Below are positions 304 to 44,773 of a stretch of DNA of 44,773 nt, piece by piece (within the stretch, counting starts at the first letter, position 1; each line of letters opens with the position of its first letter). The stretch covers positions 1-44,773 of the forward strand of contig NIVC01004473.1 of the NCBI GenBank assembly GCA_002269645.1, in the 5' to 3' direction. Under the pieces are notes generated by a model. It was not told the DNA's origin. It saw only the letters and a program-made list of their open reading frames with translations, and did not search any database. This DNA is from Macrostomum lignano. Lineage: Eukaryota. The position numbers and the translations under genes are program-made.

Positions 304-3300
304 ATGCTCGAGTTGGAGCAGTCAGCTCGCAGAGCTGCTGGTGGAGCGGTGAGTTGATCGAGTTTTAACACTACAAGACTGGCTTTGTATTGTCTCGTCA
401 GGCCCTTGGCGCCCTTGGTGCTAAAGCCCTTGGTGCTAAAGCCCCTTGGTGCTAAAGCCCCTGCATGGCGCCAAAGAAAGTCGGCAGAAACTGCTCTCTT
501 TTTAGACCCAAGTTTTCTATGGCTATTATAGCTACATGTAAATGTACATTTGTAAATTTTTACGATGATTCATTTTTAAATCCTTTGTCCCCGACGCAAA
601 ACGCATATCAATGTAGCAACGTTCACTGATTCCTTCTACCTACGCGGTATATCGGGTTTAGGTTGGAGATTTTGGTCACTCAGTCTACCGCCTTATAAGA
701 CCAATTAGGCAACAATTAGTGCATGCACCTGGAAATTCCTGAATCTCTTTCCACTACAAAAAATTATTTACAACAGGAAACAAAACTGCTGATCGCTTTG
801 CCGAGACCATTGAGACCCGGCAGCGATGTTATTGTGCACGGCAGTCTGCTGGGTTCTCGGTAAGATCCCTGAGGTTTAAAGTACATAAAATAAAGCTTTT
901 TTATTTTTGTAATACGCTTATATGTACTTGTGGTACTATATGTGAACCATACGTTGCTATGGTGTAAGGATTAGTTCCCGTATCTAAGGTAAACCATCCC
1001 TTGCTATGGTGCAGGGATTAGTGTTCTGTTGTTGAATTAACGAACGCAGAAACAAGATCGATAATTATCCGGCGCGCCCAGTGGCACCAAAAGAGGGCTT
1101 GGCCAATAGGAGGGCGGCTCGTATATTATGCAAGCGGGGAAGGAAAGTTCTAGAAAGACCGGAGAAGAAACTTCTGGAACTATGCGTAAACAAGTCCTGT
1201 TGTGGAAGTTTCTAGAAACCCTGTCCCCGAACTATCCCTACGCATTGCATGCCTTTGCAATAACAACAATTAGTTCCCGTATCTAAGGTAAACCATTCGT
1301 TGCTATGGTGCAGGGATTAGGTCCCGTATCTAAGGTAAACCATTCGTTGCTATAGTGCAGGGATTAGGTCCCGTATCTAAGGCAAACCATTCGTTGCTAT
1401 GGTGCAGGGATTAGGTCCCGTATCTAAGGTAAACCATTCGTTGCTATGGTGCAGGGATTAGGTCCCGTATCTAAGGTAAACCTTATTACAGATTCGTTGC
1501 AAAGATAAAACTTTGCCCCATTCCAGCGTGTCAGCAACTCTGCTGTCCACACAGGATACCGGAAGCCTTCGAGTAGAGCTGACTGACGCGCTTGATGACG
1601 TCACCAACCCAGCCGCAGTTTTCGAAGCCGCCATCGAGGCCCGGCGGCCGTCTGCTGGCGATGGAGCAGGGCAGCTGGGCGGGAATCGGTCGGCGCGCGC
1701 ACGGAGTTGAGAGTGCTGGCCACTCGCTTCAGCAGGTGCAGGTGTCGCAGTGCGGCTTCTCGCTGCGGTTCGGCATCGGAGAAACCTGCTACGAAGTGAG
1801 CCGATATTAGATCTTCCTGATGCGATCAGGAAATGTACTTCTTTATTATTTATTAGAGGCAGGGAGCTGTGTGCACCCTGGTGCACTTTAAGCGACATTG
1901 TCACACAACCGGCGAGAGGCATTACTGCCCATTCCGCCGACTCCCCTGAGCAGGCACACAAGCGCGCGGACACGTACGCAGTCATACGCACAGGCACACA
2001 CTCAGGAGTGTACAACAGCCCTGACTTTAGGTATCGTTAGGCATGTACACTTCACTGTGGCTTGCGGGTTGGCCCTCAAAGGGCGTTAATTGCACGAGCA
2101 GAGCCAAGCTGAGATTCCAATTTAGCCCTAAATTAATGCGACTGCACTTGGAATCAAGCCTGGGCCGCTGGCACATCAGAGCGCCGGGCTAGACCACTGG
2201 GATATGCCCCCCCCCAGAAAAAGGGTCAAGCGTCGCTGTGTAACTAGTAACATCCTTGTGTAACAGTTGTTTTATCTACAACACCAATGTACTGGGTACT
2301 ACAATAGTTTAATAAGCGATTAACCCTGGTCTAACGGGTGACTAAAACCTTTTTAACAGGTTAACAATCCATGTCTAGCAGGACACTAATCTCACCCTTA
2401 TCTACAGGGTGATAGGTGACGAACCGCACTTATTTCCAAAAGATGATAACCCACTTGTGTCTTGTAACACATAACTAGTACCCCTGTCTAACAGGTGATT
2501 AAGCCCTCGCTTGTCTAACAACTCCTGTCATGACCCCGTCAGAGAAAGGACTCGAACACAGCATTCGCTCCACTCTCGCATGCAGATCTGTATCCGAAGC
2601 GACGCCAGCGTCAATGAGAGCCAATTAGCCAGGTTCCTGCATCGCCACACTTTCAAGAACTTTACTAGACTTCTGCTGAGCGGAGCGGCCGACTTCAGAG
2701 AGATCGAATGCAGAGACGAAGACGCCAGTCTGTACTATAAGTTGTTCAGTAAGTGTCAGCTCTTCGCTCGCCACTTTTGTGACTAGCGATCGAGGCTGGG
2801 AGGAAATTGTCGTGCGATTCAAACCCTCGAGGGCCAACCGCAAGGCTCACAGAGTGTACATGCCTGACGATTATAACGGTTAGAAAGTCAGGGCGTGCCC
2901 GCGTACAGAGAAATGGGCAGAATTGCCGTCAGACGACGATTGGTGAGACGATGAGACGACGGTTGGTGAGTTGTCAGACGACGTCAACAAAGACGTTGCG
3001 CCAGAGGAGCTCTCCTGCGAATATTGATTTATCGGTTAAGTACCAAGGTTTTGATTCTGTGCGGCCACAGTGATTTGACCCTGGTCTTGTGCCGTAAATC
3101 ATGCTTGTGAGGGCCGCTGAGGTATCCGAGGGCGCGTGCCATTACGCTGACCTCTGAGCACGCACACACTCACACAGGGTGTACAGCAGCCCAGATTTTC
3201 TCGTCGTCAGACAGTGTACACTCTCTGCGCCCTGGGTATTGGCCCTTGTGAGCTTGAATCGTGCAAAAGCTTCGAATGTGCTAGAAACATCAAGCGAACG

Positions 3301-6300
3301 TGTTCAAAGCAGTCAGATATCGGTAAAAACTGAAACTGCAATTTCCAGGCGAGCCATTCAGCAGCCAGCCGGATGCCTGGGGCGAAGAGAGCCTCTGGCG
3401 GTGCCGACTGTCCCTGCCTCGAGTTGAGCACCCTCTCCAGACTCAGGCCGCAGATTGCTCAGCCGAGTCGCTGCTGACGCTCCAGATGTCAGTGGGGCTC
3501 AACGACAAAGACTTCCTGGCCGCTGCCAACCAGCTGCTGCTGTTGAAAGTGAAAGTCAACATCGAAGGTGTCGATGGTGACGACGTCGGCGACTCGCAGC
3601 CAGCCGTGGCGGCAGACACTCTGATGCCGATGGCCGCCCCGCCGACGGGAGACTGGAACAGCGGTGCGGATCAGCTGTGCAAAGTGACCCTGACTCGGGC
3701 GGAACCTTCGGGCGTGAAGCCACCTGCTGAGAATTACTCAACGCTCGCTGGTCAATCAGGCGATGAATTTCATCCCCAAGTGCAGTCTTTGGACGAGTCG
3801 CTGATTCTGAGCCATGCGGAGCGGTGCGATGCGTCACTGAGCAGCGACCTGCTGTCACCACCGCCCCTGACTGACGAGCCTGGCGACCCTAGCCAGCAGC
3901 ATCAGCAGCTGCTGCAGCCAGTCAAACTGGCTGAGCTCAATGAAACCCCCAAAGCCAATGACAGCTCGCTGTCCATCGAACAGCTTGCATCGCCTCGAGA
4001 ACCTGAGCTTCAAGATTCCAAAAAGGACAACGTCAGCAAGCTTCAGCAGTCTCCAGACAGTCGACAGCCGGCTCCGCAGTTGCTGCCGCCGCTGCGCAGA
4101 AGCCGCCGCACCGCTCCGACGATCTCACCGTTCGTGTGCCGCGCCGAGCGAGCCGCCACGCCAGAGTCCGTCGATCTGTCCGGTTCAACAAAGGAAACTA
4201 CAAGCAGTGATGTCGAAGAAGAACGATGGACTCTAGGCGATCAAGAGCACCAGCTGATGGCCGTAGAGTCCTATTTGTCCACTGCGGTGCATCCCAGGTA
4301 CTACAGCGACAGCTTGGCTGCTGAGCGCCCAGAGACCGATGGCAATCGAGAAGGCGCTCAGTTCGCGAGCTTGTCAATCGAGCTGCCAGACTTCAATAGC
4401 GATGGCAACGGAGCTTCGTCTGAGATTCTCGACGATGTGCTGGCAAAACGACGCGACCACAAGCGCCCCGATTCTGAAGATGAGTGCCTCTTGGCGCAGG
4501 CAACGCCACCGTCAGAGCACCAGGAGGCCTCAAGCACTCAACGGATTATACCCAAAGAAGACTTGCGGGCTATTTGTCTACTAGCAGATACTCTAGTTGA
4601 TGAAGCTCTCTTGGAAGCTGTCAGAAGACAAGAACAACAGACAGGTGAGATCGACGAGGTACAAAGCAATCAGCTGCCAGCGGAGGCAGTGCCAGGGCAG
4701 GAAAGCCCTGCCCTGGTTAGCGAGTATCGTCAGCAGGAGTTGAAAGCTGTCAAGCTTCAGCACAGAGAAGTGCCAGGTGAACTTCACTCTCAAATTGAGC
4801 CGCACGAAAAGGATGCGGACACAACCGAGCACCAGGACAGCGTGCTGTCAGTGGAACTGAACGCCCCACCTGAAGAGGACCATAAAGAGTCCTTGGCAGC
4901 GCTTAGCTACATGGATGAGGAACCAGCTGAAGCCAATGAAGACCAGTTTGCACCTGCCGCATATCAGCCAAGTGGCATGTCATTGAATCTTGAAGGGCCT
5001 GCTGAAATCCCTGATAAAGATTCGGCACCTGATAGGCAAGGGGCGCCGATATCTGAGCTTGAGCCACCTGCTGAGAAAAGTGAGGCTGAGCTACATGTAC
5101 AAGACAGCTTACTGTCAGTGGAACTGAACGCCCCAGCTGCGGGATTCAATGAAGAGCCGTTGGAAGTGCTTAGCAGGGCAGATCAGCAGAGCAAAATAAA
5201 AGACAACGAAGATAAACCGACACCTGTGGCACATCAGAGCAGTGCGCTGTCACTGGAGCTTGAACCACCACCTGACATCCGCGATGACGAAGTGACACCT
5301 AGAGAGCATCTATCATCGGAGTTTGAACCTCATGCTAAAGCAGAAACCGAGAAGTTGATTCCGGCCAAGAAACCGCAGTGGAGGCTTGAACCACCATTTA
5401 AGACCAGTAAGAATGAGCTGGAAGAAGCTGAGCACCAGGACATCGCGTTGTCAGTGGAACTGGACCCACCAACCGCTGAACGGACCCATACCGAATCGCT
5501 AGCTGCTATGGGCTATCAGCAAATTATAGAAAAAGACAAGAATGAGGAACCAAATGAAGTAACCGAAGATATGCTAGAACCTGTAGCACAGCAGACGAGT
5601 GGCATATCATCAGAGCTGGGTCCACCACCTGAGATTCGAGATGAGGACTTGGCACATGTCACACACCAGACGAGTGTCATGTCATCTGACCTGAGACCTC
5701 CACCTGAGATACAAGATGAGGACTTGGAACCTGTCACACACCAGACGAGCGGCATGTCATCGGACCTGAGACCTTCTCCTGAGATACAAGATGAGGACTT
5801 GGCACCTGTCACACACCAGACAAGCGGCATGTCATCGGACCTGAGACCTTCTTATGAGACGCGAGATGAGGACTTTGCACCCGTCACACACCAGACGAGT
5901 GTCATGTCATCGGACCTGAGACCTCCATCTGAGACACGAGATGAGTACTTGGCACCTGTCAAACACCAGACGAGCGGCATGTCATCGGACCTGAGACCTC
6001 CATCTGAGACACGAGATGAGTACTTGGCACCTGTCACACACCAGACGAGCGGCATGTCATCGGACCTGAGACCTCCATCTGAGACACGAGATGAGTACTT
6101 GGCACCTGTCACACACCAGACGAGCGGCATGTCATCGGACCTGAGACCTCCATCTGAGACACGAGATGAGTACTTGGCACCTGTCAAACACCAGACAAGT
6201 GTCATGTCATCGGACCTGATACCTCCATCTGAGACAAAAGATGAGGACTTGGCACCTGTCACACACCAGACGAGTGACATGTCATCGGACCTGAGACCTC

Positions 6301-8773
6301 CATCTGAGACAAAAGATGAGGACTTGGAACCTGTCACACACCAGACGAGCGGCATGTCATCGGACCTGATACCTCCATCTGAGACGCGAGATGAGGACTT
6401 GGCACCTGTCATACACCAGACAAGCGGCTTGTCATCGGACCTGAGACCTCCATCTGAGACAAAAGATGAGGACTTGGAACCTGTCACACACCAGACGAGC
6501 GGCATGTCATCGGACCTGATACCTCCATCTGAGACAAAAGATGAGGACTTGGCACCTGTCACACACCAGACGAGTGACATGTCATCGGACCTGAGACCTC
6601 CATCTGAGACAAAAGATGAGGACTTGGAACCTGTCACACACCAGACGAGCGGCATGTCATCGGACCTGATACCTCCATCTGAGACAAAAGATGAGGACTT
6701 GGCACCTGCCACACACCAGACGAGTGACATGTCATCGGACCTGAGACCTCCATCTGAGACGCGAGATGAGGACTTGGCACCTGTCATACACCAGACAAGC
6801 GGCTTGTCATCGGACCTGAGACCTCCATCTGAGACAAAAGATGAGGACTTGGAACCTGTCATACACCAGACAAGCGGCATGTCATCGGACCTGAGACCTC
6901 CATCTGAGACGCGAGATGAGTACTTGGCACCTGTCACACACCAGACGAACATCATGTCATCGGACCTGATACCTCCATCTGAGACACGAGATGAGTACTT
7001 GGCACCTGTCAAACACCAGACGAGCGGCATGTCATCGGACCTGAGACCTCCATCTGAGACGCGAGATGAGGACTTGGCACCTGTCGCACATCATGTCGGT
7101 GGCGTAGAGCAAGGACTTAATCCGCCTTCTGGGAGTGCAGATACCCAAGATGAGCTCAGTGCGCTTTCATTGGAGCTTGAACCAGCTCACGAGAATCGAA
7201 CCGACGCATTGGGAGCGATGTTTCACAAGCAAAGTGAAAGCTCGCCAGAAACTGGTGGACAGGCTCAGTCCCATGAGGAAGAGCTCACTACTGAACCCGT
7301 CAAACACGAGTACACTGCAATGTCTCCTCATTCAGCAGAACATCGCGAACAGGCGTTGAAAGCAAAGCAACTGCAGCGAATCGACAACTCGCTGAACTCG
7401 GATCGTCCTGAAAACTCATCTCCGTCTAGCGAGGTGTCGGAATCTTCCGCAAACGAGCTTCGACCAGATCTACTTCGGGACTCGAATCAGCCCCCAATTA
7501 ACAGGAAGCATGCTAAGCATCCTTCGGAGCAGCGCGGCGGGGCCGCTACGCCACCCGTGATGGCGAATTTTGCCTGCCACGTCGAACGGGGAAACAGCTG
7601 CGCGTCCAGCGTCCGTTCGCGTTCAGACACCGACGAAGCTGGCGCAGATACAGCTGCAACGAACTCGCCCAAGATATCGAAGTTCAGCTGTCGGGTTTAC
7701 CGCAACGGAGAACTGGTGGAAGCCAACGATATCAGTGAGGCTCCGCCTGCGGATGGAGCAGCAGCTCGGTCGAGCGTGTGCTCATCAGCATCAACCGCCG
7801 AGGAGCAAGAAGAGTGGCACGAGTTCAACGGACGCACGGTATCAGTGTGAGTTGCCTGCGCAGTTGGCTAAACGCTTTTTTAAACTCAATAGCAAATACC
7901 GGTACAAGAATCGCACACATGTACTCGTAGTTCGTAAGACCTAGCTCTTGCCCAATGCAAGGGTCTTGGTCCGCCTTTCCCTTACATGTAGGTGCATCCA
8001 CAAAGGTCAGGTCTACGAATCCAGAAACATCTGAAAAGGCGGTTTCCAAATCAACACTTTTTGTGTAATAAACCAGCTAGGGAGAGTTTTTCAGTTGGCT
8101 TCATGGAAAAGTTTCCTCAAAAATGGGGAAAACTTTTCTTCGACTAAAAGGTCCGGGAAGTCGCGGATAAGTTCAACTTGTACATGTAGTTCCCTAAGCT
8201 CCAACCCACCCACCACCAGAAAGCTTTTCAGTGTTTCTGTATCCTGGAAAAGCTCAGCAAGAGACTCAAAAATATTTCTCAATTTCTCGCTAAATCTCAG
8301 GACGCGGATCTCGCAGCCGATGCCGGAATGCCCGCAGTCTTGGAGTTCAACTCGTCGCGAGCGGCGCCCCCGACGAAGTCACCCGGTGTGCCAAGTCGGC
8401 GTCACCGACGGCAACCAGGTAAACGTTGCTTGGCTGCCAAGCCTGAGGCGCGGTCACGGAGGACAGCAGGTTGTTAAGGACGCCGAGTTGGACGTTGTCA
8501 GACAAACGTTGAAAGCACCGTTTCTGTCCTCCGTCGGATTAGAAATGTCTGATCGAGGCTGCGACGTGAGTTGTTGGGGGAATTAACATTAATATTTTTT
8601 TCCTTCTTCGTGTCATTAAGTAAAAGATTAAACATTTGGGCTACTTATTATTCCCAAGGCGATGACTGCTTAACCCCAAACAAAACTGATTTCAGGTGGT
8701 TGTGAAGCAGACTTACCCAACAGTTTCAGCCGGTATTCGCGCGTGCTCGGGAGCTGATCATCCATCGGTTTAA
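304..8773 (+). CDS. Multi-exon gene for a ~1799-aa protein: divergent galectin-like N-terminal domain, long acidic low-complexity region and 25-aa tandem repeats
   Basis: Hand-built exons 304-348, 777-859, 1527-1795, 2586-2748, 3349-7846, 8301-8565, 8696-8773. All junctions are GT..AG with matching phases (0,2,0,1,2,0). Total is 5400 nt after removing one C at 1640-1642. Possible AATAAA near 9006. The true start and the last two exons are less certain. Confidence 0.6.
777..2748 (+). CDS. Exons 2-4: galectin-like (Gal-bind lectin fold) domain, apparently lacking the canonical sugar-binding motif
   Basis: Spliced translation LPRPLRPGSDVIVHGSL...LRVEL...GSWAG...GFSLRFGIGETCYEICI...QLARFLHRHTFKNFTRLLLSGAADFREI resembles the galectin pattern (PG..I.I.G; W; F.L.I; F.HR...L.I.GD). 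Judged by eye, no profile search. Confidence 0.5.
944..1482. repeat. 47-bp minisatellite interrupted by an insertion
   Basis: Unit CCATTCGTTGCTATGGTGCAGGGATTAGGTCCCGTATCTAAGGTAAA, about 1.7 copies before 1021 and about 4.5 copies after 1273. Confidence 0.9.
1022..1268. mobile_element. Probable solo LTR (247 bp)
   Basis: TGTT...AACA termini flanked by a 5-bp direct duplication ATTAG (1017-1021 and 1269-1273) inside the minisatellite. Confidence 0.6.
2007..3247. repeat. Three copies of a ~70-bp dispersed repeat (2007-2078 +, 2829-2907 -, 3178-3247 +)
   Basis: TCGTTAGGCATGTACACT..GGCTTGCGGGTTGGCCCTC at ~2035-2078 matches the reverse complement of 2829-2870. The third copy is more diverged. Confidence 0.7.
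3349..7846 (+). CDS. Giant 4.5-kb coding exon, E/D/S/P-rich and probably disordered (contains the 1454-aa ORF)
   Basis: The frame is open from the acceptor ATTTCCAG at 3348 (upstream of the ORF ATG at 3486) to the donor GTGAGT at 7847. The ORF-track stop lies inside that donor. Confidence 0.85.
5578..7092 (+). repeat. Coding 75-bp (25-aa) tandem repeat, 20 copies
   Basis: Consensus APVTHQTSGMSSDLRPPSETRDEDL counted in the ORF; the period was checked at 5881 to 5956. Confidence 0.95.
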
Positions 8774-10089: not shown

Positions 10090-12720
10090 CTAGTCGGAGA
10101 GGAGCGCCTGCAGAGACTTCGGCGTGCTCGGATTATTCAGCGTCCTGGTGCTGTACTTGAGCACGTTGAGCAGCGCCTCGCACAGCTGCTTTTCGCCCGG
10201 CTGCTGCGCCTGGTGATGCTGGTCGGGGCGCAGCACCCGGATGCAAGCCCGGATGTCCACCAGGGAGCCGCGAGCGAACACTCCCAATGGGTGCACATAG
10301 TCGTAGAGGACGCACACGCCCACCATGACGCGAAGGCAGAGTGGCACCGTTTCCTGGTAATGGGGATTGTGGGATTTAAAAGTACGTTTCAACTGAGGAA
10401 CAGTGAGGATTTCCAGATCCCAACTCTAAACTAAGGAACAATGGGGATTTCCAGATCCCAACTGTAAACTGAGGAACAATGAGGGATTTCCAGATGCCAA
10501 CTGTAAACCGAGGAACAATGGGAGATTTCCAGATCCCAACTGTAAACTGAGGGGATTTCCAGATCCCAACTGTAAACTGAGGACCAAAAATATATCCATA
10601 TCTTAACTGAACTAAGAAACGTCAGTTCCCAACCCCCACCAAACAGCAGATACGCACCTCCGGCTTCTTAAGCCTCTGCCGCAGATCTGGATTAGCCACC
10701 AAGCCGCGGCAAATGTCAGCGATGGCGGCTAAGCACTCCGAAGTGGTGTTCACTGGCAGATTTTTGTGCGCGGACATAAAAGCGCCGGTGCATTCAGTGA
10801 GCAGGCGCATCATTGGCGTGTGCTGTGCATAGAAAATGCTCATCTTGCTCACTTCTTCGTCAGATAGGGCGCCTTCGGTCTGCGGACGTGTTTTTGGTAA
10901 AATGGTTTACAAAGAGTTTCGACTGCTTTTCAGTTTGCATTTTCGCGACTGCACATTGCGTATTTCAGTAGATTTTCAGCAACTGTTTATTGCGTATTTC
11001 AGTGAGTATTCAGCAACTGTTTATTGCGTATTTCAGTGAATATTTAGCAACTGTTTATTGCGTATTTCAGTGAATATTTAGCAACTGTTTATTGCGTATT
11101 TCAGTGAGTATTCAGCAACTGTTTATTGTGTATTTCAGTGAGTATTCAGCAACTGTTCAATGCGTATTTCAGTGAGTATTCAGCAACTGTTCAATGCGTA
11201 TTTCAGTGAGTATTCAGCAACTGTTCAATGCGTATTTCAGTGAGTATTCAGCAACTGTTCAATGCGTATTTTAGTGAGTATTCAGCAACTGTTTATTGCG
11301 TATTTCAGTGAGTATTCAGCAACTGTTCAATGCGTATTTCAGTGAGTATTCAGAAACTGTTCAATGCGTATTTCAGTGAGTATTCAGCAACTGTTCAATG
11401 CGTATTTCAGTGAGTATTCAGCAACTGTTCAATGCGTATTTCAGTGAGTATTCAGCAACTGTTCAATGCGTATTTCAGTGAGTATTCAGCAACTGTTCAA
11501 TGCGTATTTCAGTGAGTATTCAGCAACTGTTCAATGCGTATTTCAGTGAATATTCAGCAACTGTTTATTGCGTATTTCAATGCGTATTCCCTCCCTCTCC
11601 CGACGCAACTGTTTATTGCGTATTTCAGTGAATATTCAGCAACTGTTTATTGCGTATTTCAGTGCGTATTCCCTCCCTCTCCCGACGCAACTGTTTATTG
11701 CGTATTTCAGTGAGTATTCAGCAACTGTTCAATGCGTATTTCAGTGAGTATTCAGCAACTGTTCAATGCGTATTTCAGTGAGTATTCAGCAACTGTTCAA
11801 TGCGTATTTCAGTGAGTATTCAACAACTGTTCAGTGCCTATCGGTTGTACTGAAAAGTTTAATCAATTATTATAAGTAAGCATTTTCGTTGCTTTTGCAC
11901 CTGTCTGTTTGACAGACAAAGATTTCACCAGCCTTGCCGTTAAAACACGTATCAAGAGAAGCTTTGCTAATGCGCCATTCGTTACTCCGATAAGACAGCC
12001 TTGCTTGCAGCTGGCTAAAAGTGTTCACAGAGCTAATAATACTTCGTATCAGCAAAATTCCAACTGTTAAAACTGCAGAAACAACTTGTCTGTAAAAAAT
12101 AGTCATCTTGGCTAAATGAAGAGCAAACAATTAATACTTTGAACGCATGCACGCATTCGGCTGTGTACACCACAGTTGCATTCGGTGAAGCTAAATTGAA
12201 GATTGCACAGCCGGAAATAGAATCACGGCAGGAACTATTATTTACTTGAAGCGCTCCTGGCTCTCTTTCTCTCTCTCTCTCTCTTCACAGCTCCAAGGTA
12301 GCACTGACGCATCCAGTCAAGATTAGGTGAATCCTTGCGACCACTTGCGAGGCATATTTGCGCGCATTGCATCACGAAATTATTGTGCTGGTTTATTTAC
12401 AAACTTCTATTCAACTTTGCACGGCTTGTTAAGTCAAGGTAGATAGCAAGAAACGCTTAAGGTAGAAGGCAACAGCAAGGCTGACCTCGGCGCGTTGCGG
12501 ACTAATTTATGCTAAACGGAATTTACTGCACAGACATCTTCATAATACAATATCATTATACCGACTGGCGACTGATAGTTCTTGCTCAGAGTAGGCAAGC
12601 ATTGATTGATAAACAGATATGAGAGATAGAATACACTGATACTTATATAGATAGATAGATACATAGACAGATAGATAGATAGATAGATAGAGAGATAGAT
12701 AGATACATAGATACATAGTC

Positions 12721-12781
<61 letters not shown>

Positions 12782-12824
12782 CATAGATACATAGTCAGAT
12801 AGATAGATAGATAGATAGATAGAC

Positions 12825-12905
<81 letters not shown>

Positions 12906-12920
12906 CATAGATACATAGTC

Positions 12921-12959
<39 letters not shown>

Positions 12960-13604
12960 CAGATAGATGGATATCCAGATACATACAAACTAAAAAAACA
13001 GATAGCCAGACGGACAGGCAGACAAAGACAAACCTTGTGGCGCCGGTGCACCCGCTTATAATAGCTGAGATCGTTGGTCATGGTGGGAGTCTTCATTTTG
13101 ACCTCGTCAAACTTGATAACAAAGTCAATGATGAGGGCGAACTGCGTGAACAGAGCCTGCTGCTGCTCAAGATGCTCTTTAGCGGTCTTCTCAGCTGAGC
13201 ACAGCGACTCAAGCAGGCTGCTGATGAGGGTCTCCAACTCCTGGCCGAAGCTGTAGGCCTCCTGCAGGCGGCGGACGAGGTCCTGCACGCTGGCCCAGGC
13301 CCGTTCCTGCAGCTCCTCATTGTTGGGATCTGTGAGAGCATTCCGAATCTCGTTAGCGGCGCCTGGATACTCGCGCATCGAGCGCATGATCTCGTCTGTG
13401 CGGGCCAGCACGGCCACGGCGCTGGCATAGTGAGCCTGCTCGGCCTCGGTCGGCTCGGCGACTGGAGGGCGAGAATATGCGGTTGAGCGACTGTGCCCTA
13501 TTGTGTCTGCTTTTTTAATCTGACGCTTTTTCAAATATATATACATTGTGAGCTGATGGACACAATGAAAGATAATAAAGCATTAGGTGACAGACAAAAA
13601 ATAC

Positions 13605-13646
<42 letters not shown>

Positions 13647-13698
13647 GCTAAGACAGACACAAAGACAGACAGACAGACAGACAGATAGACAGACACAA

Positions 13699-13737
<39 letters not shown>

Positions 13738-13850
13738 TAGACAGACACAAAGACAGACAGACAGACAGACAGACACTAAGACAGACACTAAGACAGACAG
13801 ACAGACAGACGGATAGACAGACAGACAGACAGACGGATAGACAGACACAA

Positions 13851-13881
<31 letters not shown>

Positions 13882-13938
13882 TACTAAGACAGACACTAAG
13901 ACAGACAGACAGACAGACAGACGGATAGATAGACACAA

Positions 13939-14007
<69 letters not shown>

Positions 14008-14267
14008 GGCAGACAGACAGACAGATAGATAGACACAAAGACAGACAGACAGACAGACAGACAGACGGACAGACAGACAGGCAGACAGACACAAAGACAC
14101 TAAGACAGACACAGACAGACAGACAGGCAGACAGACAGACAAAGACAGAAATATGATTCAGCCAGAACTCAGGCCCTCAGCAACTCACACTCCATATCGA
14201 TGAAGACATCGGAGGACCTGTCGGCGCCGCCGTCCGATCTGGTCAGCAGTCGAATCAGGTTTCCCAT
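10090..14267 (-). CDS. FAM49: CYRI/FAM49 family Rac1-interacting protein (330 aa, 4 coding exons)
   Basis: Exons 14267-14189, 13461-13034, 10879-10658, 10353-10090 with canonical phase-matched junctions (993 nt). Motifs [62 protein letters not shown] and [14 protein letters not shown] match FAM49. Confidence 0.93.
10395..10585. repeat. ~38-bp minisatellite in CYRI intron 3
   Basis: About 5 copies of GATTTCCAGATCCCAACTGTAAACTGAGGAACAATGGG. Confidence 0.85.
10955..11835. repeat. 34-bp minisatellite (~25 copies) in CYRI intron 2
   Basis: Unit GCGTATTTCAGTGAGTATTCAGCAACTGTTCAAT, period checked at 11161 to 11195. Two variant units carry CCCTCCCTCTCCCGAC. Confidence 0.95.
12640..12985. repeat. 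(GATA)n microsatellite
   Basis: Long AGAT run with ACAT/AGAC variants. Confidence 0.95.
13590..14150. repeat. (GACA)n microsatellite filling most of CYRI coding intron 1
   Basis: Long AGAC run with interruptions. Confidence 0.95.
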
Positions 14268-14335: not shown

Positions 14336-15109
14336 AACTATCCAATAAAAGGCAGTAATATTTTAGGGCTGACTAAATTGACTAAAATAGTGTTTGAAAA
14401 ACACACAGAGAGGGAGAGAGGTCTGGACAACAGGCAAAACCAAACAGTTAATAAGTTTAAATATAGAGATCTGTGCGCAAGGGTTGGGGCAGAAAATGAA
14501 ACCTGAACGATCCGAATGCGTTCGGGTTGGCCAAAGCACAGGGCTTAGCGAGATGCTAGTAGGTACAAGGAGACAGATGTAAGTAGACAGTCGCAGGCAG
14601 AACATCCACGATGCAGTGCAGTTTTAAGTAGAGGCAAGTACAGCACCACCGTACAGTGCTGCGCATAGCTTGGCGAATTTGCTGCACAAAACTCGCTGAC
14701 AAAAGACAGAGATGAAAGAAGTTTAGAAACTTAATTGTACAGTCAGAACAACATCCACCGATGCCAAGCGAACCCGCCTTTCTGCCAAGCCCCCGCATTA
14801 GGCAGAAAGCCGACTGGACTCCAGGCCAGCTTCCACGCAGGCGCTAACAGTGAATTTTTTTAGAAACAGTTGTGAAGTTCTGAGTTCGGTTTCTCTGCGA
14901 CTTGAAAAAAGACTCAAAAGAAAAAAACTGTTTACTTTATCTATGACGAATGCCCCACCCCTTGCAAAGCCTGTACATTTGTATTTACTGTCTAAGGGCA
15001 AATCTCAGCGCTAAACAGATTACACATCCTTAACCTTTAACAAAAACAACTTGAATAATGCTAGTACTCTGATACGGGATCTGTGGGTTTGGAGGTCAGT
15101 GCTGAGAAC

Positions 15110-15765
15110 TTGGTATGTGTGGAATCTGTCGAGTTAGAGCTCTGTGATGAGCACTCTGTGGTGTGGAATCTGTCGAGTTAGAGCTCTGTGATGAGCACTC
15201 TGTGATGTGGAATCTGTGGAGTTAGAGATCTGTGATGAGCACTCTGTGGTGTGGAATCTGTGGAGTTATAGCTCTGTGATGAGCACTCTGTGGTGTGGAA
15301 TCTGTCGAGTTAGAGCTCCGTGATGAGCACTCTGTGGTGTGGAATCTGTCGAGTTATAGCTCTGTGATGAGCACTCTGTGATGTGGAATCTGTGGAGTTA
15401 GAGATCTGTGATGAGCACTCTGTGGTGTGGAATCTGTCGAGTTAGAGCTCTGTGATGAGCACTCTGTGATGTGGAATCTGTGGAGTTAGAGATCTGTGAT
15501 GAGCACTCTGTGGTGTGGAATCTGTGGAGTTAGAGATCTGTGATGAGCACTCTGTGATGTGGAATCTGTGGAGTTAGAGATCTGTGATGAGCACTCTGTG
15601 ATGTGGAATCTGTGGAGTTAGAGATCTGTGATGAGCACTCTGTGGTGTGGAATCTGTGGGGCTAGAGCTCAATTATGAGCACTCTGTGGTGTGGAATCTG
15701 TGGGGCTAGAGCTCAATTATGAGCACTCTGTGGTGTGGAATCCGTGGGGCTAGACCTGAATGATG
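15110..15765. repeat. 44-bp minisatellite (~15 copies)
   Basis: Unit TGATGAGCACTCTGTGGTGTGGAATCTGTCGAGTTAGAGCTCTG, period checked at 15145 to 15189. Confidence 0.95.
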
Positions 15766-16234
15766 AGCTTAGTGTGAAAATGAAAATCAACTTGGGCCTT
15801 TTTCTCACAATATATATTGCCAGATCTCACTATGTTATCTGGGCTCATTGGCTTTTTTATCTGTGATAATCTGTCAAATACCAGAAGTTATTATGGGGAG
15901 AAATTCTATCATAGATATTCTCAGTAGCTTATTAAATATTACCAGTTAGCATTTCAGGATATTGCTTGGCTTAATGTATTAGGCACCTTACTACTTATAC
16001 ATCTCATATACTACTTTTAGCCTTTGGCATTTTTAAGATTAGATCATAGCACCTATAATATTGCTTTAGTATATATTTTAATATCCTTTTATAGAACTTC
16101 TCCTGAAAATATTTTTATATTCTTTATCCAAGCTACTTTTACAATATATATATACTAGCCTTATATGAGTGTATTTAGCCCCTATATGTATTGCACAATT
16201 GTTGAAGCCTACAAGATGTGTCAGAAGTCTGTAT

Positions 16235-30049: not shown

Positions 30050-33000
30050 ATGGAAGATTTTCGTCTAGTGCCGTTAGTAGCTCTGGTGGCTTTCCTGCTG
30101 CTCTGTTGTCGGTCTTCATCTGCTCGACCGGAGGCCTCTACCTGCGGCTACAACGCCTGCCCGAAGCCCGTGCCAGGTAGGGTCAACGTCCACCTGGTGC
30201 CGCACACGCACGACGATGTTGGCTGGTTGATGACAGTTGACCAGTACTACTACTATCAGGTGCAGTTCATTCTGGACACTGTGGTGGAAGAGCTGCTCAT
30301 TAATCCGGATAGAAAGTTTACGTACGTTGAGATAGCCTACTTCTTCAGGTGGTGGCGAGAGCAGAGCGCCGATAAGCAGGCTAAGGTGAGCGTCATTTTA
30401 TACCTGATCGATTTATTGTGAGCCGGGTTGCTCGGCAAATTGTCGATTCAAACTTCGCAGGCTTTCATTTTTACGCTGGTTTCTTGCCAACGTTGAGGGA
30501 ATTTTAATGTGAAATTTGGGGTGGTTAAAGTACTGTAAGTACCTGTTTTGCTCGAAATTGGGGATTCGAAAATTGGAGGTGTGAAGTTCGGGGATCTGCA
30601 GTTTGGAAATGTGAAGATTGGAGATGTGAAGATTGAGGGATGTGAAGATTGGGGGTGTAAAGATTGAGGGGATATTAAGATTGATGATAATAAGTTTAAG
30701 AAGAATATGAAGCTGGGGAATGTGAGGCTTAGGGATATGAAGTTTGAGGATCAGAAGTTTTCGAATAAGAATGTGGTTTTGAACTCACCAGAAAGGTAAA
30801 TGAGTACCATTTTAGCCATTTATCGCTCCCGCCAACACGCAGGTGAAGCAGCTGGTGAAGAACGGTCAGCTGCAGTTTGCCCAGGGCGGCTGGTCCATGG
30901 ACGACGAGGCGGCAACCCACTACGTGGACATCATCGACCAGCACACGCAGGGACTCCGGTTTCTCAACGACACTTTCGGCGACTGCGGCAGGCCTCGGGT
31001 TGCCTGGCAGGTGGACCCGTTCGGGCACAGCAAAGAGCACGCCGCAATGATGGCGCTGATGGGCTACGACGGGCTGTACTTTGGCCGCATCGACTATCAG
31101 GATCAGGCGATTAGGCGGAAGACGCGGCGCATGGAGATGGTAGGCTGATCAAAGATCTTCGGATAGTCGGGGGAACGATCGAGAGTGAGATACGGAGAGT
31201 CAGGAAACGGAGAGTCAGACACGGACAATCAGTCAGGGAACGAGAGTCAGACACGGACAGTGAGAGTCAGACACGGACAGTGAGAGTCAGAAACGGACAG
31301 TGAGAGTCAGACACGGACAATGAGAGTCAGAGAGTCAGACACGGACAGTGAGAGTCAGACACGGACAGTGAGAGTCAGACACGGACAGTGAGAGTCAGAC
31401 ACGGACAGTGAGAGTCAGACACGGACAGTGAGAGTCAGACACGGACAGTGAGAGTCAGACACGGACAGTCAGAGACTGAGAGCCAGTGGGAATGAGACAC
31501 ACCGAGAGTCAATCACACCTAATTGACAGTCCTCCGACAACAACAGGTGTGGCGGGCCAGCCAGGATATCGGCAGTCCTCAGACGGATCTGTTTTCTGGC
31601 AAACTGTACGATGGCTACGGCCAGCCAGGAGGCTTCAGCTTCGAGACGGGCGACCAGCCCGTGCAGGACGACCCGCAGCTCTACGACTTCAATGTGGAGC
31701 AGAAGGTCAAACAGTTCGTCGACATGGTGAACACTCGCCGGCAGGTGTACAGCTCCGATCATCTCATGCTGACTATGGGTAACGATTTTCAATACCAGAA
31801 TGCCCGCAAGAACTTCAAAATCTTCGACAAGCTGATCAAGGCGGTGAACAACCGTACTGCGGCGCACAATGTCACAGTGTACTACAGTACGCCAAGCTGC
31901 TACACAAAATCAGTGCACGATCAGAACCTGGTGTGGACGGTAAAGAGTGACGACTTCTATCCCTACGGATTCGATGCTCACTCGTTCTTGACTGGCTTCT
32001 TCACCAGCCGCGCCGCTCTCAAGCGCTACGTGCGAACCGCTTCGAACCAGTTCCAGGCCGTCAAGCAGACAGCCTGTCTGGCTGGCTTGCAGCGGGATGG
32101 CGCGGAGCCCGACGCAAGAATTGATCCCCTGCGCCAGGCTTTGGGCGTTGTGCAGCATCACGATGGAGTGTCCGGTGAGTAGTGGATATTGGAGTATTGT
32201 TAATGAGTATTGGAGCGCGGCGTTTCAGTGAATAGATGCCCAGAGGTGAAATACGGGCAGGGTGTAGAATTGGGGCAGGGTGTAGAATCTGGGGCAGGGT
32301 GTAGAATCTGGGGCAGGGTGTAGAATCTGGGGCAGGGTGTAGAATCTGGGGCAGGGTGTAGAATCTGGGGCAGGGTGTAGAATCTGGGGCAGGGTGTAGA
32401 ATCTGGGGCAGGGTGTAGAATCTGGGGCAGGGTGTAGAATTAGGAGCAGAGTGAAGAGTTGAGGATAGGGTGTGGTATTGAGGGCAGGACAGGGTTTAGT
32501 CGAATTGGTGATATTGTAGAAAACACCCTTTACATATGTATGATTGTTCGGTATAAAATTACACAGCACTTCTGCATTAACAACCCATCGAATCACATGT
32601 GCTCACATTGATGGGGTCGCTGTTTTGCAGGCACGGAGAGGCAGCTAGTTGCCTACGACTATGCGCTGCGAATCTCCAACGGAATCGACCGGGCCTACCC
32701 GGTGCTGCAATCTGCTTTGGCGAATCTCACCGGAGACAGCGCCGCCTACTCAGGCATGTCTACCTGCGGCCTGGCTAATATCTCCTACTGCCCGTTCACC
32801 GACTCCAACACCGACTTCTACCTGCACTTTTATAACCCGGTGAGTCACCCGGTATGGCACCTCGCCAGAATACCGGTTACCGGGCGCTACTACGTCGTTA
32901 GCGACGAACATGGCCAGGCGGTGATGTCGCAGACTATCCCGGTGAATAATGGTACTCTGCGAGTACCTGAACGGGCAGGTGCGAAATCCACCTGCGAGCT

Positions 33001-35716
33001 GGTGTTCAACGTGTCAGCCATTCCAGCCATGGGATTCGCTGTCTACCGAGTGGCTGCCGCGGCCCCCGGCTCTCCAGGCGTCTCAACGTTCACCCCGATC
33101 CGGCTGCTGTTCGGGGGCTACGGCAGGGGCAAGATTTCGGCATCGAAGACGAAGGCGGACTGGCTGAGTCAGCACACTGGCTGCGGAGTGCCCAGCATGG
33201 CTTATTATTACGGATATCCGGGCAACAATTCTAGAGCAGAGTTCAGAGCCTCCGGCGCTTATGTGCTTCGGTGAGATCTTCAGTGACCTATGTATGCTTT
33301 TTTTACCCTAGTCACACCTGTCACCCTAAAAAATCGAACCCACTTTCAGGCCAACCAGGCAGACCCCGGAGCAGTTCTCACTCGAGCAAATCGCTGGCGT
33401 ATTCGGCCCGGTGGTGAACGAGACTCACCTGCTCTGGTCCGACTGGGCCTACCAGGTGTTGCGCAAATTTTCCAACAATGGCGACTCGCTGCAGTACAAC
33501 GAGAACGAGCTCACAGTCGGCCCGATTCCCTACGACGCCAACACCGGGCGAGAGGTGATTGTGCGCTACGACTCACAGCTGAGCAGCTCGGCTACTTTCT
33601 ATACCGACGCAAACGGTCGGCAGGTGATGCGTCGAGTGCGCGATTACCGACCAAGCTGGCCGCTGCAGCAGACGGAGAAGGTGGCCGGGAACTATTATCC
33701 CGTCCCTAGCCAGATCTTCATCAACCAGAGCGACGGCGCCTCTTTCACGGTGCTCACTGACAGAAGCGAAGGCGGCAGCAGCATCAATGACGGGCAGATT
33801 GAGGTGAAAAATGCAGGGCAGTCTTTATTTACTCACCTGACCTGTCACACAGAGCTCGCGCGAGCACATTCACAATAGTGTGTGCACTAATCGCCCTGAC
33901 TTTCTTTAACATGAGTAATGTACACTGGTGTACATGTATCTCAGTAATGCATTTTGCAGCCTGTTGGTTTGGTTGTCCATACGTACACCCTGTGTGAGCC
34001 TGTGTACGTATCCGTGTGTAAAGGACCACTAGAACGTTGGCGTTGTGTCACGGTATCCCGCTGAAAAAGATACCCGTTGGCAAGAATCGCCAAAGAATCA
34101 CTTGTGACTCTAGCGACTCTGGGGAGACTCAAACGACTGTAATGAAACGGAGGCTACTGTTGAGTCACGAGAGCATCGCGTCAGTTTTAAGAGTTGTAAA
34201 AGAGTCGCCCAATAGTCGTTGTGTTGGCGCATAATGTTCTACAAACTCAAGCAGACTAAATACAGTTGTTTTACAAATGCGAAATGGAATTTTAATTCAT
34301 AAAGCGACGCAGATGAGCATTAGACGCAATTCAGTGATTCTAGCTCGTACAGGGACTCTAGCACGCGTCAGATACGAGACATGATCTACGGCCCCAGAGT
34401 AATGAAAGGTCATGAAACATGAAAATTTCCATGCGTACGAGCGTATAAACAATAAAAATGCTCAAATTGACTCTTAGGTGACTCTTTAACGACATTTTGG
34501 TCGACTTTTACTGCGACATCTCGTCGTTTTTTAGTCGTCTAGAGTCACTTCTTTTCTATTTTACCTGTGTTACCTGCCAAGACTCTGGAACGACTCTGGG
34601 GCGATGCAAGGGACTCTGATTGAGATGCTTCTTAGCCTAGGTACGACTCGTCGGGTATGACTGCAAAAAACATTGCGCATAGTCAATAATCTACTGTACG
34701 CCTGTCGTTCCCGCATGTACGCTCGTAGATATACATGTGCATGTAAAGACGAACTTTGGGTCATCTTAAAGAGAACAAAATGTCAAACTACCTGACGAAA
34801 AATTATCATTTTAAGTGCAACTGATCCTGAGTCATGAGCATTTAAAGTTTAGCTGCAATGCTTACAAGCGGACCTTCAAATATAATTTTGCAATATTTAA
34901 GCGTGCTACGTTCTGCTACAAGCTGGCAACGATCTAGAGGTCTTTGATGTGTGTGTGCTCAGGGGTCAGCGAAATGACACTGCGGGTTGGCTGTTTATTT
35001 TCGGCAGTGCTTAAAGCATCCCTGCAAGCTAGTAGCAAACTATATGTACATGTACACATGTACACTTTTAATCACTGTCTTCCTTTTTCATCCGCATTTT
35101 GAATTATCAGATCATGCTTCATCGAATCACGGCTCGCGACGACGCTCTAGGCCTCGGCGAAGCGCTGCAAGAGAAAGGCAGCGATGGTCGCGGCCTGGTT
35201 GTCAAGGTAACGCACTGGTTCGCAGCTGACCAATCGCTGTCGTCCGCTAGTCGTCGCCGACGCGAGCTGGCCAATCGCCGCTACCGAGAGCCGCTGATTG
35301 GCTACCTGACCGCGGAGCCCAAGGTCAAAAGATGGAGCGGACTGCGTCGGCCCCTGCCTGAGAATGTCCAGGTGGTGACTCTGGACGACTGGCGCGGGCC
35401 GAACACAAAGCTGCTTCGACTGGAGCATCTGTACCAGACAGGTGAGCACCCCGCACTGTCCCAGCCCGTCACCGTGGCTCTCGGCCAGATGTTCGCCACC
35501 TTCGACATACTCGGTGCAATGGAGCTGAGTCTGGCTGCCAACCAGTATTTGGCGTCAATGCAGCGGCTGCAGTGGCGGACGACCGCAGCCGGAGGCTCGG
35601 CCGCCCAGAACGCTGCCAGAGAGGCAGTCGAGAGGCGACAGCTCGACCAGAACCTGACAGTGACGTTGCGACCGATGCAACTTCGCACCTTTGTAGTGCA
35701 GGTGCAGTACTTGTGA
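30050..35716 (+). CDS. MAN2B1: Lysosomal alpha-mannosidase (GH38), 986 aa, 6 exons
   Basis: Exons 30050-30385, 30843-31139, 31547-32174, 32631-33270, 33350-33803, 35111-35716 (2961 nt, phases match). Signal peptide; [76 protein letters not shown] and LRPMQLRTF motifs. Confidence 0.93.
31195..31480. repeat. 20-bp minisatellite in mannosidase intron 2
   Basis: GAGAGTCAGACACGGACAGT, about 13 copies. Confidence 0.92.
32255..32440. repeat. 19-bp minisatellite in mannosidase intron 3
   Basis: GGGGCAGGGTGTAGAATCT, about 9-10 copies. Confidence 0.92.
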
Positions 35717-36714
35717 ACCCGTCGATACCGTGTCGGTGCTGCTTCGATGGCTAAAAAACTTTGCTTCTTTGATAAAAACTACCGCGATGACAGTTGTTAA
35801 AAACTGTCTGTGTTTGCAGGTTTTGCCTGGGTTGTTCCTAAATTGCTTCTGGGTTGATCCTGAGTTGCCAGTTTAGTTTTAAAGTGTTAGTGCACTGGCT
35901 ACATGTCTAAGCGTGTGTAAAATAATTGCGTCAAATGCGCTTATTCTCGCGTAAAGTGGCGTGCGGAAATCACGTAAAAAGTGGCGAAAATTGCGCGTTT
36001 TACGTACCGGTACATGTACGTCGGCTGCGTGCGTTCTATGCGCGAGATCTACGCGTGTAGAACGTAAGTGTTACACGCCAGAGTTCTGGATAGGAGTCTG
36101 GGACGCTTCTTGTCCTTGGTAGCGTTTTCAATCATGCATTAATTGCAGAGAGTTTCTCAATCCGTTTTCTATCAAATTTTCACTTACTTATAACAATATG
36201 TTTCGTCTTTTAACTCGGTCAGAAGTTCCTAACCGCAATATCAAAAAAAATTCTCTGATCAAATTTTTGCACTTTTTCGAGTCAAATATTCAAATGATTT
36301 TTCTAAAAATCTAAGCCCTATACTTATTCACAGATCAATTATTATTGCGATCAAAGAACTCGTAACTGTTTCAATACCTGCATCTTATTCACCATTTTGA
36401 AACTACCTGTCTGAAGCATCAATACATTGATAAGCATTACACTACCCATTGACACGCAAATTGGACAATATATGGTATTGTCCATAAGCGAACGCAGTTT
36501 AATGAGTAATTACTCAGTATATAGCAGATTTTGTGGCGAAAAGAAATTAAATGACAAGCGTACGAACGCTCGTACGCAGTTATCATGCAGAATATTCTTG
36601 TCGTTATAACCAACGGTAGAATAATTTGATTGAGGTCGACATTATATAGGCCACTCCACACCCCAGATGGTTCATTAAGCACTGTCTTTATGTCAATTTG
36701 ACTCGCAATCCTAT

Positions 36715-37020
36715 ACATTCACGTCCTACAATTCAACATCCAAGTCCAGCAATCCAACATCCCCGTCCTGCAATCCAGAACATCCACGCAATCCAACATC
36801 CACGTCCTACAATTCAACACCCACGTTCTACAATCTAACATCCGCGTACTGCAATCCAACATCCACGTCCTGCAATCCAACATCCACGTCCTGAAATCCA
36901 ACATCCACGCGTCCTGCAATCCACAACATCCACGCCATCCAATATCCACGTCCTGCAATCCAACATCCACATCTTACAATCCAATATCCCACGTCTTACA
37001 ATCCAACATCCACATCCACA
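36715..37020. repeat. Degenerate ~21-bp minisatellite
   Basis: CAACATCCACGTCCTGCAATC-like units. Confidence 0.85.
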
Positions 37021-37089
37021 AATTAATGTGATCCCGCACAGAATCGGGCCCAAAACTTTGGCACGTGAGTCAGATCAGATACTCTGTCC

Positions 37090-37400
37090 TCTATGTCACG
37101 CATTTCAAGTACTTCAGATATACATGCCTATCGCTTGTGGCCATCTCCTGCAGACAGCGGCTCGTACCTTCCTGACCAGCGCCAGCCCCAGCTGGTGATG
37201 AGCAGCTCCTATATATTCGAAGACCATATACTGCATGGACGAAAGCCATTCCGGATGTCGTTGGCTGCATTCTAAAGTGCAACACCGCCGCTAACAACTG
37301 ACTGGCGGTGCTTTTTAACCGACAGATTCGGCTCGGTTACCTGCTAAAGCTCGCTTTGGTGCCGCAGAGCACCGTATAGAGGGAGAGTTCTATGCTCGTG
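37090..37400 (+). mobile_element. Possible decayed LINE RT C-terminal fragment
   Basis: VTHFKYFR (FKYLG-like) and RQIRLGYL remnants with stops; weak. Confidence 0.3.
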
Positions 37401-37539
37401 GCTAAAATTCTTTCTTACATATTCTTCTCATCGATATTCACTAAACATGCCTTTGTGATGCTTAGTTTGATTGGTTTGCAAAATATTGGACCTTGGGTCT
37501 TTTGAAACTTTGCACTAGCAATCTGGCCCGCTCAAGGTT

Positions 37540-37636
37540 TGTGTCTCTTCTCTTCTCTCTCCCCTCTCTCTTCTCTACCCTCTCTCCTCTCTCCCCTCTC
37601 TACCCTCTCTCCTCTCTACCTCTTTATTCTCTACCT

Positions 37637-37711
<75 letters not shown>

Positions 37712-37800
37712 TTCTCTCGTCTCTCCCCACTTTCTCCTCTTGTCTTCTTTCTTATCTCTTCTCTCTCATCACTTATCTTCCATTCCTTCTCCTTTCCTCT
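37540..37800. repeat. (CT)n microsatellite and pyrimidine tract
   Basis: Direct reading. Confidence 0.95.
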
Positions 37801-44200: not shown

Positions 44201-44773
44201 TTCTCCAGTCTTTCGAGCTCATTTGAGTGGTTGATACGCAGCGAACGGCAACTTGCGAGGAGGCTGCACTTTTGGCGCGGCGTTGTCAGCAAGCCGGATG
44301 GTGTACGGTTGCTCCATGCAGCCAAACCGTTGAATACTTCAGGGTATGTGGCTTTCACCTGAGAGGCTGTGAGTTCTGACACCTGCTGTTTTTGCACTTT
44401 GCTGATGCTGCTGCTCTGGCTCTGCACAGCAAATAGTTTCTTGACTAACTGAAGCTCCTCAATTGCTGATTTCCAGCCTATAATCGGTGTAGAGCTCTCG
44501 CCGATGACTACAAACTGAAGTTTGACATTCTTACGGCAGGGCGATGACACTGTCAAGTACGTGGTGCCGATCACGTCCAATAGCTGCTTATTGTAGGTGG
44601 TCAGTGTCCAGGACGTAGGCTCAATTGCTGCTGCTGGGCGAGCTGGATCAGATGTCTCAGAGGAATCACATTAACATCCGCCCCAGTGTCTACCTTGAAG
44701 TGCAGCTTTCTTCCGGAGTCCGTGACTGACAGGCAGACCATCATTGACGAGGCATCTGTTTGCAACTTGGGCT
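41297..44773 (-). mobile_element. Ty3/Gypsy LTR retrotransposon pol (protease-RT-RNaseH-integrase), disrupted; continues beyond the window
   Basis: FKVDTGADVN, RLCLD, FFDDIIVWG, VDASKSGIGAVL, YAQIEKELLA, HAGHPG..CEAC, SDNGPQF, PQSNGRAER and terminal TRRGRLVQQPKRY motifs, spread over several frames. Confidence 0.95.
41395..41880 (-). repeat. 15-bp coding repeat (QPAPV/QPAPE), ~32 copies, in the integrase C-terminal tail
   Basis: CAGCCGGCACCTGTG units in frame within the 338-aa ORF. Confidence 0.93.

Follow-up and report, generated by a model that had tools for sequence, protein, structure and literature searches.

A diverged galectin-like domain and a long acidic repeat chain in a putative chimera-like gene of Macrostomum lignano

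The DNA studied here is contig NIVC01004473.1 of the Macrostomum lignano assembly GCA_002269645.1, whose 44,773 nucleotides (nt), read on the forward strand, are referred to as the window. Near its start, four short exons and a 4.5-kilobase (kb) open exon form a candidate gene, one of the copies of a small gene family known from M. lignano alone. Our best overall explanation, to which we assign a probability of about 0.5, is that members of this M. lignano-only family carry a diverged galectin-fold domain joined to a long acidic repeat chain. The gene is a lineage-restricted, chimera-like, non-canonical galectin relative, and the copy in the window is either misassembled or decaying.

Results

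Exon structure of the locus

An earlier reading of the same DNA (hereafter the original prediction) had proposed seven exons. Their features are listed below; A0A1I8JEH8 and A0A1I8GVY8 are two UniProt models of M. lignano copies of the gene, and aa stands for amino acids.

Exon 1, 304..348 (+): ATG + 15 codons, MLELEQSARRAAGGA; the ATG has A at -3 and is closely preceded by an in-frame stop; equals the N-terminus of A0A1I8JEH8 and A0A1I8GVY8.
Exon 2, 777..859 (+): 83 nt, first exon of the galectin-like domain, LPRPLRPGSDVIVHGSLLGSR; ends in phase 2; aligns to galectin LxPGxxIxIxG.
Exon 3, 1527..1795 (+): 269 nt, the "W exon" of the domain; GSW aligns to the conserved galectin Trp.
Exon 4, 2586..2748 (+): 163 nt, last exon of the domain, ICIRSD..FLHRH..LLLSG..FREIE; donor A|GTAAGT; identical to A0A1I8JEH8 up to residue 179.
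Proposed intron 4, 2749..3348 (+): holds a repeat fragment at 2810-2871; supplies the tail of the public models.
Exon 5, 3349..7846 (+): 1499 open codons, acidic and Ser/Thr/Pro-rich; first ATG at 3486; stop TGA 7848-7850 overlaps the next donor.
Proposed exon 6 (speculative), 8301..8565 (+): island rich in guanine and cytosine (GC), 88 open codons, basic peptide.
Proposed exon 7 (speculative), 8696..8773 (+): stop TAA 8771-8773; AATAAA at 9007.

All six proposed introns run from GT to AG at the predicted junctions and have donors of the GTRAGN type. Codon-usage log-odds favored the proposed frame over the other two in each of the eight exon segments, both halves of exon 3 included. The independent UniProt models have junctions 348/777, 859/1527 and 1795/2586 as well, whereas 2748/3349, 7846/8301 and 8565/8696 draw their support from the window sequence itself, so that outside corroboration extends to the first three predicted junctions and not to the last three. 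Two of the introns contain repeats of their own: a 15/16-nt microsatellite of about 3.3 copies in intron 1 (411-462) and, in intron 2, a 47-nt tandem repeat (1269-1482, 4.6 copies, 97% matches) that is preceded at 923-1063 by older, partial copies.

Related proteins are found only in M. lignano

When the spliced N-terminal model was searched against 5.8 billion proteins, the single match was A0A1I8JEH8 from M. lignano (224 aa, E = 8e-107), which is completely identical to the translation of window exons 1-4 over residues 1-78 and 85-179. The second annotated copy, A0A1I8GVY8 (225 aa), is likewise 100% identical over exons 1-4 apart from one short stretch, and A0A1I8FFV2 (82 aa) is a short, divergent M. 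lignano copy that alternates between reading frames. These matches identify the window as nuclear DNA of M. lignano. Searched exhaustively with HMMER, the domain returned M. lignano copies and two spurious repeat proteins, with no relative outside this species. Exact look-ups of A0A1I8JEH8, A0A1I8FFV2 and the 1454-aa open reading frame (ORF) of exon 5 in public assemblies gave no match.

The original prediction had described the domain as hidden. In fact the product of exons 1-4 is already present in UniProt as the 224- and 225-aa models; it is hidden in the sense that both bear an unrelated name, "Rad60-SLD domain-containing protein", and no galectin-like annotation. A Pfam scan gave no Rad60-SLD match that would account for the name. 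The two models share the first three junctions with the window gene and the same protein up to residue 179; they differ in reading AAHRGPGG where the window is frameshifted and in having no acidic tail, and they terminate inside proposed intron 4.

Their 3' end requires a 22-nt GT..AG "intron" (2729-2750), after which translation runs over an intronic repeat fragment to TAG 2881-2883. We rejected this as a real gene end on account of both features, and it looks like a gene-predictor artefact; that the C-terminal tail of both models is translated across the 2810-2871 fragment suggests that they run into the intron. This fragment and another at 2033-2097 in intron 3 form an inverted pair (80% identity over 65 nt). 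The locus thereby flags an annotation problem, with public M. lignano models that are misnamed and end in an intron, and a 4.5-kb ORF that appears unannotated.

The N-terminal domain shows a modest resemblance to galectins in profile and gene structure

PF00337 (Gal-bind_lectin) was the sole Pfam family to match near the full length of the domain. In every sequence version the match covered profile positions 4-130 of 132, and this check, which the original prediction had proposed, gave a single near-full-length hit, albeit one of 14.8-17.6 bits (E = 0.0028-0.02) against a gathering score of 22.1 bits. Weak Pfam matches to Myelin_MBP, DGF-1_5 and FAZ1_cons were dismissed as chance. We also compared the domain by hhalign with a profile of eight human galectin domains. 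This yielded P = 3.8e-4 to 1.5e-3 over 114-117 columns with probabilities of 17-36%, the best alignment (P = 3.8e-4, 117 columns) having a probability of 36%. In a local rerun the real sequence scored 25.7, while 200 shuffled versions scored 11.9 +/- 2.2 (maximum 18.1) and 0/200 reached the real score; the reversed domain scored 11.6 over 16 columns, at the shuffle mean.

Gene structure provides a line of evidence independent of the profile score. In animals a galectin domain is encoded by three exons, of which the second, the "W exon", carries the Trp and terminates in strand F3 or F4 (PMC5751359, PMC10343441). The domain in the window is similarly spread over three consecutive exons (exons 2, 3 and 4, of 83, 269 and 163 nt) with the conserved Trp of GSW in the middle one. 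In the hhalign alignment, the exon 3|4 boundary (CYE|ICI, phase 0) coincides with galectin-1 VAE|VCITF (E87|V88), which we take to be the LGALS1 exon III|IV boundary, in the same phase as here. The domain also shares with galectins the absence of a classical signal peptide.

Seven residues make up the galectin sugar-binding site: His, Asn and Arg on S4, Asn on S5, and Trp, Glu and Arg on S6. In the alignment with the galectin sequences only 2/7 are retained, the Trp of GSW and the final Arg, and the HxNxR motif and the Glu are replaced, which agrees with the predicted loss of sugar-binding residues. Two stretches of about 11 and 20 aa are also inserted in the domain relative to galectins. Measured against galectin membership, gene structure and the lack of a leader thus speak for the domain, and the sequence threshold and signature residues speak against it. 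Vertebrate galectin-related proteins possess a domain without the canonical beta-galactoside-binding residues (PMC10343441), and the domain studied here is, judging from its alignment, most likely of this "galectin-related" kind, its canonical beta-galactoside site having been lost.

Could the resemblance instead be fortuitous, with the N-terminal part being an orphan beta-rich domain similar to galectins by chance or convergence? The PF00337 score below the gathering threshold fits such a view, and that score comes mostly from the exon 3b/4 half, the N-terminal half alone giving no match. A phmmer search of the PDB with the domain found no galectin, the hhalign probabilities stay at 17-36%, and 5/7 signature residues are absent. 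On the other side, the match is collinear over almost the entire profile and no other Pfam family covers nearly the whole domain, neither shuffled nor reversed sequences approach the real hhalign score, and the three-exon "W exon" layout is an independent galectin feature (PMC5751359). Galectin domains adopt a beta-sandwich (jelly-roll) fold of about 130 residues, but structure prediction did not help to decide: single-sequence AlphaFold2 of A0A1I8JEH8 was uninformative (predicted local distance difference test, pLDDT, 34.5), and near-identical M. lignano copies, the sole relatives, provide no alignment depth. We consider chance or convergence quite improbable, and are fairly confident from the combined sequence evidence that the domain has a genuine, though very diverged, galectin fold whose sugar site has degenerated. 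The galectin-like domain of the original prediction is thereby upheld at a modest level by profile coverage, hhalign, shuffling and exon layout, with the reservation that it falls short of the PF00337 gathering score.

Exon 5 encodes a long acidic chain with a coding minisatellite

Exon 5 contains the 1454-aa ORF at 3486-7850, whose frame is open upstream to 3327, across the acceptor tttccag|G at 3348, as originally described. Within it lies a coding minisatellite at 5579-7090 (+), which Tandem Repeats Finder resolved as a 75-nt unit present in 20.2 copies with 91% matches. In the protein this corresponds to 20 units of 25 aa with the consensus LAPVTHQTSGMSSDLRPPSETRDED, in agreement with the predicted 20 repeats, and the core motif HQxSxLSxEL.PP recurs in degenerate form between 4827 and 7211. 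The near identity of the units, together with higher-order 50- and 75-aa patterns, points to recent unequal crossing-over. Across the repeats the minus strand also shows a 392-aa ORF, which was discarded as a by-product of their periodicity.

The translated model has the predicted acidic body and, with the speculative exons 6-7 included, the predicted basic C-terminus: the whole model has an isoelectric point (pI) of 4.57 with 18-21% D+E, the tail has a pI of 4.3-4.4, and the peptide of exons 6-7 would be basic (pI 9.5). Neither a signal peptide nor a membrane segment was found, again as predicted, the N-terminus being hydrophilic and the maximum 19-residue Kyte-Doolittle hydropathy being 1.18. 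The product is therefore likely to be cytosolic or nuclear, or to be exported non-classically like galectins. Exon 5 had no match in the PDB (phmmer) or in Pfam, and its chain is probably disordered.

Besides the array, a 14-aa motif, [ST]Px[IM][SA]xFxC[RH][AV]xR, occurs once before and twice after it and may be another putative binding site. The three copies are as follows.

TISPFVCRAER: residues about 412-425, window approx. 4110-4151 (+).
VMANFACHVER: residues about 1601-1614, window approx. 7553-7594 (+).
KISKFSCRVYR: residues about 1638-1651, window approx. 7664-7705 (+).

A weaker fourth copy (HPVCQVGV) is present in proposed exon 6.

The domain is likely joined to the acidic chain

The proposed junction 2748/3349 between exons 4 and 5 was derived from sequence features. 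At 2749 there is a donor of the form A|GTAAGT, and without splicing the frame would continue for 12 further codons to a stop. The acceptor at 3349 is the only one that is in phase, open and preceded by a pyrimidine tract. Upstream of ATG 3486 there are 46 coding-like sense codons, and codon usage in this segment ranks the proposed frame first among the three. At position -3 from ATG 3486 stands a C, another ATG lies out of frame upstream at 3373, and no AATAAA or ATTAAA is found between the two exons (intron 4, 2786-3348).

The main rival to this arrangement is that the two parts are separate genes, possibly of one operon: a galectin-like protein of about 190 aa ending soon after exon 4, and an independent acidic repeat protein of 1454 aa, spliced-leader (SL) trans-spliced at 3348 and starting at ATG 3486. 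Both arrangements are common in M. lignano, where trans-splicing affects 30% of genes and operons hold 15% (PMC8629364), and the acceptor at 3348 could accordingly be the trans-splice site of a separate gene. In addition, the acidic ORF has its own ATG, and A0A1I8JEH8 and A0A1I8GVY8 stop in intron 4, short of the acidic ORF. The value of the latter point is reduced by the form of that 3' end; owing to the 22-nt "intron" and the read-through over a repeat, it is weak evidence against the fusion. Two genes would moreover leave the strong GTAAGT donor at 2749 unused, would have no polyadenylation-type AATAAA/ATTAAA between them, would start the second protein at an ATG in poor context after an out-of-frame ATG, and would not account for the 46 open, coding-like codons ahead of it. 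We therefore regard two genes as unlikely and consider it likely, from these sequence signals, that in intact copies exon 4 splices at 2748/3349 onto exon 5.

Further observations must be set against the joined protein. We found no transcript or protein record joining exon 4 to exon 5. The exon-5 head (first 179 aa) has no relatives among the 5.8 billion proteins, and its single-sequence AlphaFold2 model was uninformative (pLDDT 40.7). The window copy is frameshifted, such that translation from ATG 304 as assembled terminates at TGA 1708-1710. Exon 6 scores no better for codon usage than intron background.

Exon 3 of the window copy is frameshifted

The original prediction held that the small exons splice in phase. 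This proved wrong for the window: the listed exons sum to 5401 nt, which is not divisible by 3, and translation halts inside exon 3. This exon follows one frame up to about 1641 (..AAVFEAAIEA) and the next frame from 1646 on (GGRLLAMEQGSW). As a consequence, the motifs that had been quoted as a single reading belong to two frames of exon 3, with PGSDVIVHGSL..SLRVEL..AAVFEAA in one and GSW..FSLRF..YE in the next. The proposed frame is the best by codon usage in both halves of the exon, which fits a frameshift within a true coding exon.

The site of the shift, 1633..1645 (+), measures 13 nt in the window, as opposed to the 15 nt that we infer for the annotated copies from their protein sequences. 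At this position A0A1I8JEH8 and A0A1I8GVY8 read AAHRGPGG and A0A1I8FFV2 reads AAIEAPRG, each continuing with RLL, and both versions imply 15 nt. Reading across exon 3 works only with 12 or 15 nt in place of the 13 at 1633-1645, so the copy as assembled would be unable to make the fused protein. Rescue of the frame by a micro-intron is impossible, the two frames being only 13 nt apart. Use of a different acceptor, 1638/1639, restores the frame, yet this site lacks a pyrimidine tract and would remove about 37 residues (strands S3-S4).

The frameshift reflects either a minor misassembly of a GC-rich stretch or the decay of a duplicate in a hidden-polyploid genome. If real, it would make the window copy a non-functional, recently decayed duplicate, which is compatible with the joined protein being produced from intact copies. 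Pointing in this direction are the 13 nt found where two mutually agreeing annotated copies have 15, the existence of a much more degraded paralogue (the frame-switching A0A1I8FFV2), and the hidden polyploidy of M. lignano with its many redundant copies (PMC10468722). Against recent decay, all 174 remaining residues of exons 1-4 are identical to A0A1I8JEH8 and the 4.5-kb exon 5 is open throughout. Two 1-nt differences, spaced 11 nt apart within GC-rich sequence, make up the shift, which is also how a consensus error would look, and the comparison with the other copies is made through their protein sequences. Decay of this copy is thus a possibility that we hold with some doubt.

The 3' end of the gene

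Exons 6 and 7 were proposed on the basis of splice signals, an open frame and a GC-rich island. An equally simple solution is that the gene ends at the ORF's own stop, 7848-7850, which is followed by AATAAA at 8067. To include exons 6-7 in the gene is, on these sequence features, speculative.

Proposed architecture and comparison with known galectins

According to our model, the four short exons would encode a highly diverged galectin-fold domain without a canonical beta-galactoside site, and exon 4 would be joined at 2748/3349 to the 4.5-kb exon, adding about 1500 acidic, Ser/Thr/Pro-rich residues within which a minisatellite of 20 x 25 aa appears to have expanded recently. As a working model, we envisage a chimera-type lectin-like scaffold in which the beta-sandwich may dock on a protein or a non-canonical glycan partner, with the long acidic repeat tail serving as an extended spacer or as a multivalent, probably phosphorylated, binding platform. 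Taken as one protein of roughly 1800 aa, specific to M. lignano and combining a degenerate, non-beta-galactoside-binding galectin fold with a giant, minisatellite-driven acidic tail, this architecture is proposed tentatively from the sequence. We know of no galectin or galectin-related protein with such an architecture.

The closest comparisons are with two kinds of galectin relatives. LGALSL/GRP, LGALSL2 and GRIFIN share with the window gene a single galectin-type domain, the loss of sugar-binding residues, the absence of a signal peptide and a three-exon structure. They differ in that each is a stand-alone protein of about 140-170 aa and is clearly recognised by sequence, whereas the window domain lies below the Pfam threshold, has two insertions and probably carries a tail of about 1600 aa. 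Protein-database searches with the domain detected no orthology of the window gene to any of the three.

The tail of galectin-3 is N-terminal, about 110-120 aa long and rich in Pro, Gly and Tyr, and its domain binds sugar. Like the proposed protein, this chimera-type galectin combines one galectin domain with disordered, non-lectin tandem repeats and has no leader (PMC5751359, PMC10343441). The acidic tail proposed here, with its 25-aa repeats, would instead be placed C-terminally and be some ten times as long; its join to the domain is predicted, and the domain has a degenerate sugar site. The N-terminal, Pro/Gly-rich, collagen-like repeats of the galectin-3 type are thus not what this locus contains; its 25-aa units lie in an acidic, Ser/Thr/Pro-rich segment placed after the domain.

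If the fusion is true, it would add to the galectin-fold architectures a chimera type in which the domain comes first, lacks a canonical sugar site and is followed by a very long acidic repeat chain. The galectin fold would here have been put to a new, lineage-specific use, anchoring a disordered scaffold, and the protein would offer a tractable case, in a flatworm amenable to transgenesis, for asking what "galectin-related" domains do once they no longer bind sugar. If it is false, the locus would comprise a small galectin-related orphan gene adjoining an orphan acidic repeat gene. In other respects the locus resembles the many repeat-rich, lineage-restricted genes that this duplicated genome contains.

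Other features of the window

The remainder of the window contains ordinary animal genes and transposons, and Rfam and tRNA scans of the window were empty. The genes and elements are listed below.

12719-13546 (-): exon of a CYRI/FAM49 Rac1-binding protein gene (PF07159, E = 4e-46).
13583-14142: long simple repeat abutting the CYRI/FAM49 exon, with spurious SVCL/SIYL "ORFs".
30050-35716 (+): multi-exon GH38 lysosomal alpha-mannosidase gene (Glyco_hydro_38N, Alpha-mann_mid, Laman-like_dom, Glyco_hydro38C2).
39320-40387 (+): intact 355-aa mariner/Tc1-like transposase ORF with HTH_48 and DDE_3 domains.
41297-44580 (-): Ty3/gypsy-type retrotransposon pol fragments in several frames, with RT_RNaseH and a putative integrase-like ORF.
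About 41320-42040: coding minisatellite of the PAPVQ type.

In the GH38 gene the sole junction inspected, 33271/33350, is clean and in frame. GC skew reaches +0.31 at 15001-16000 and -0.28 to -0.34 at 36001-38000, probably reflecting simple-sequence tracts such as the SLSLSL "ORF" at 37539-37937.

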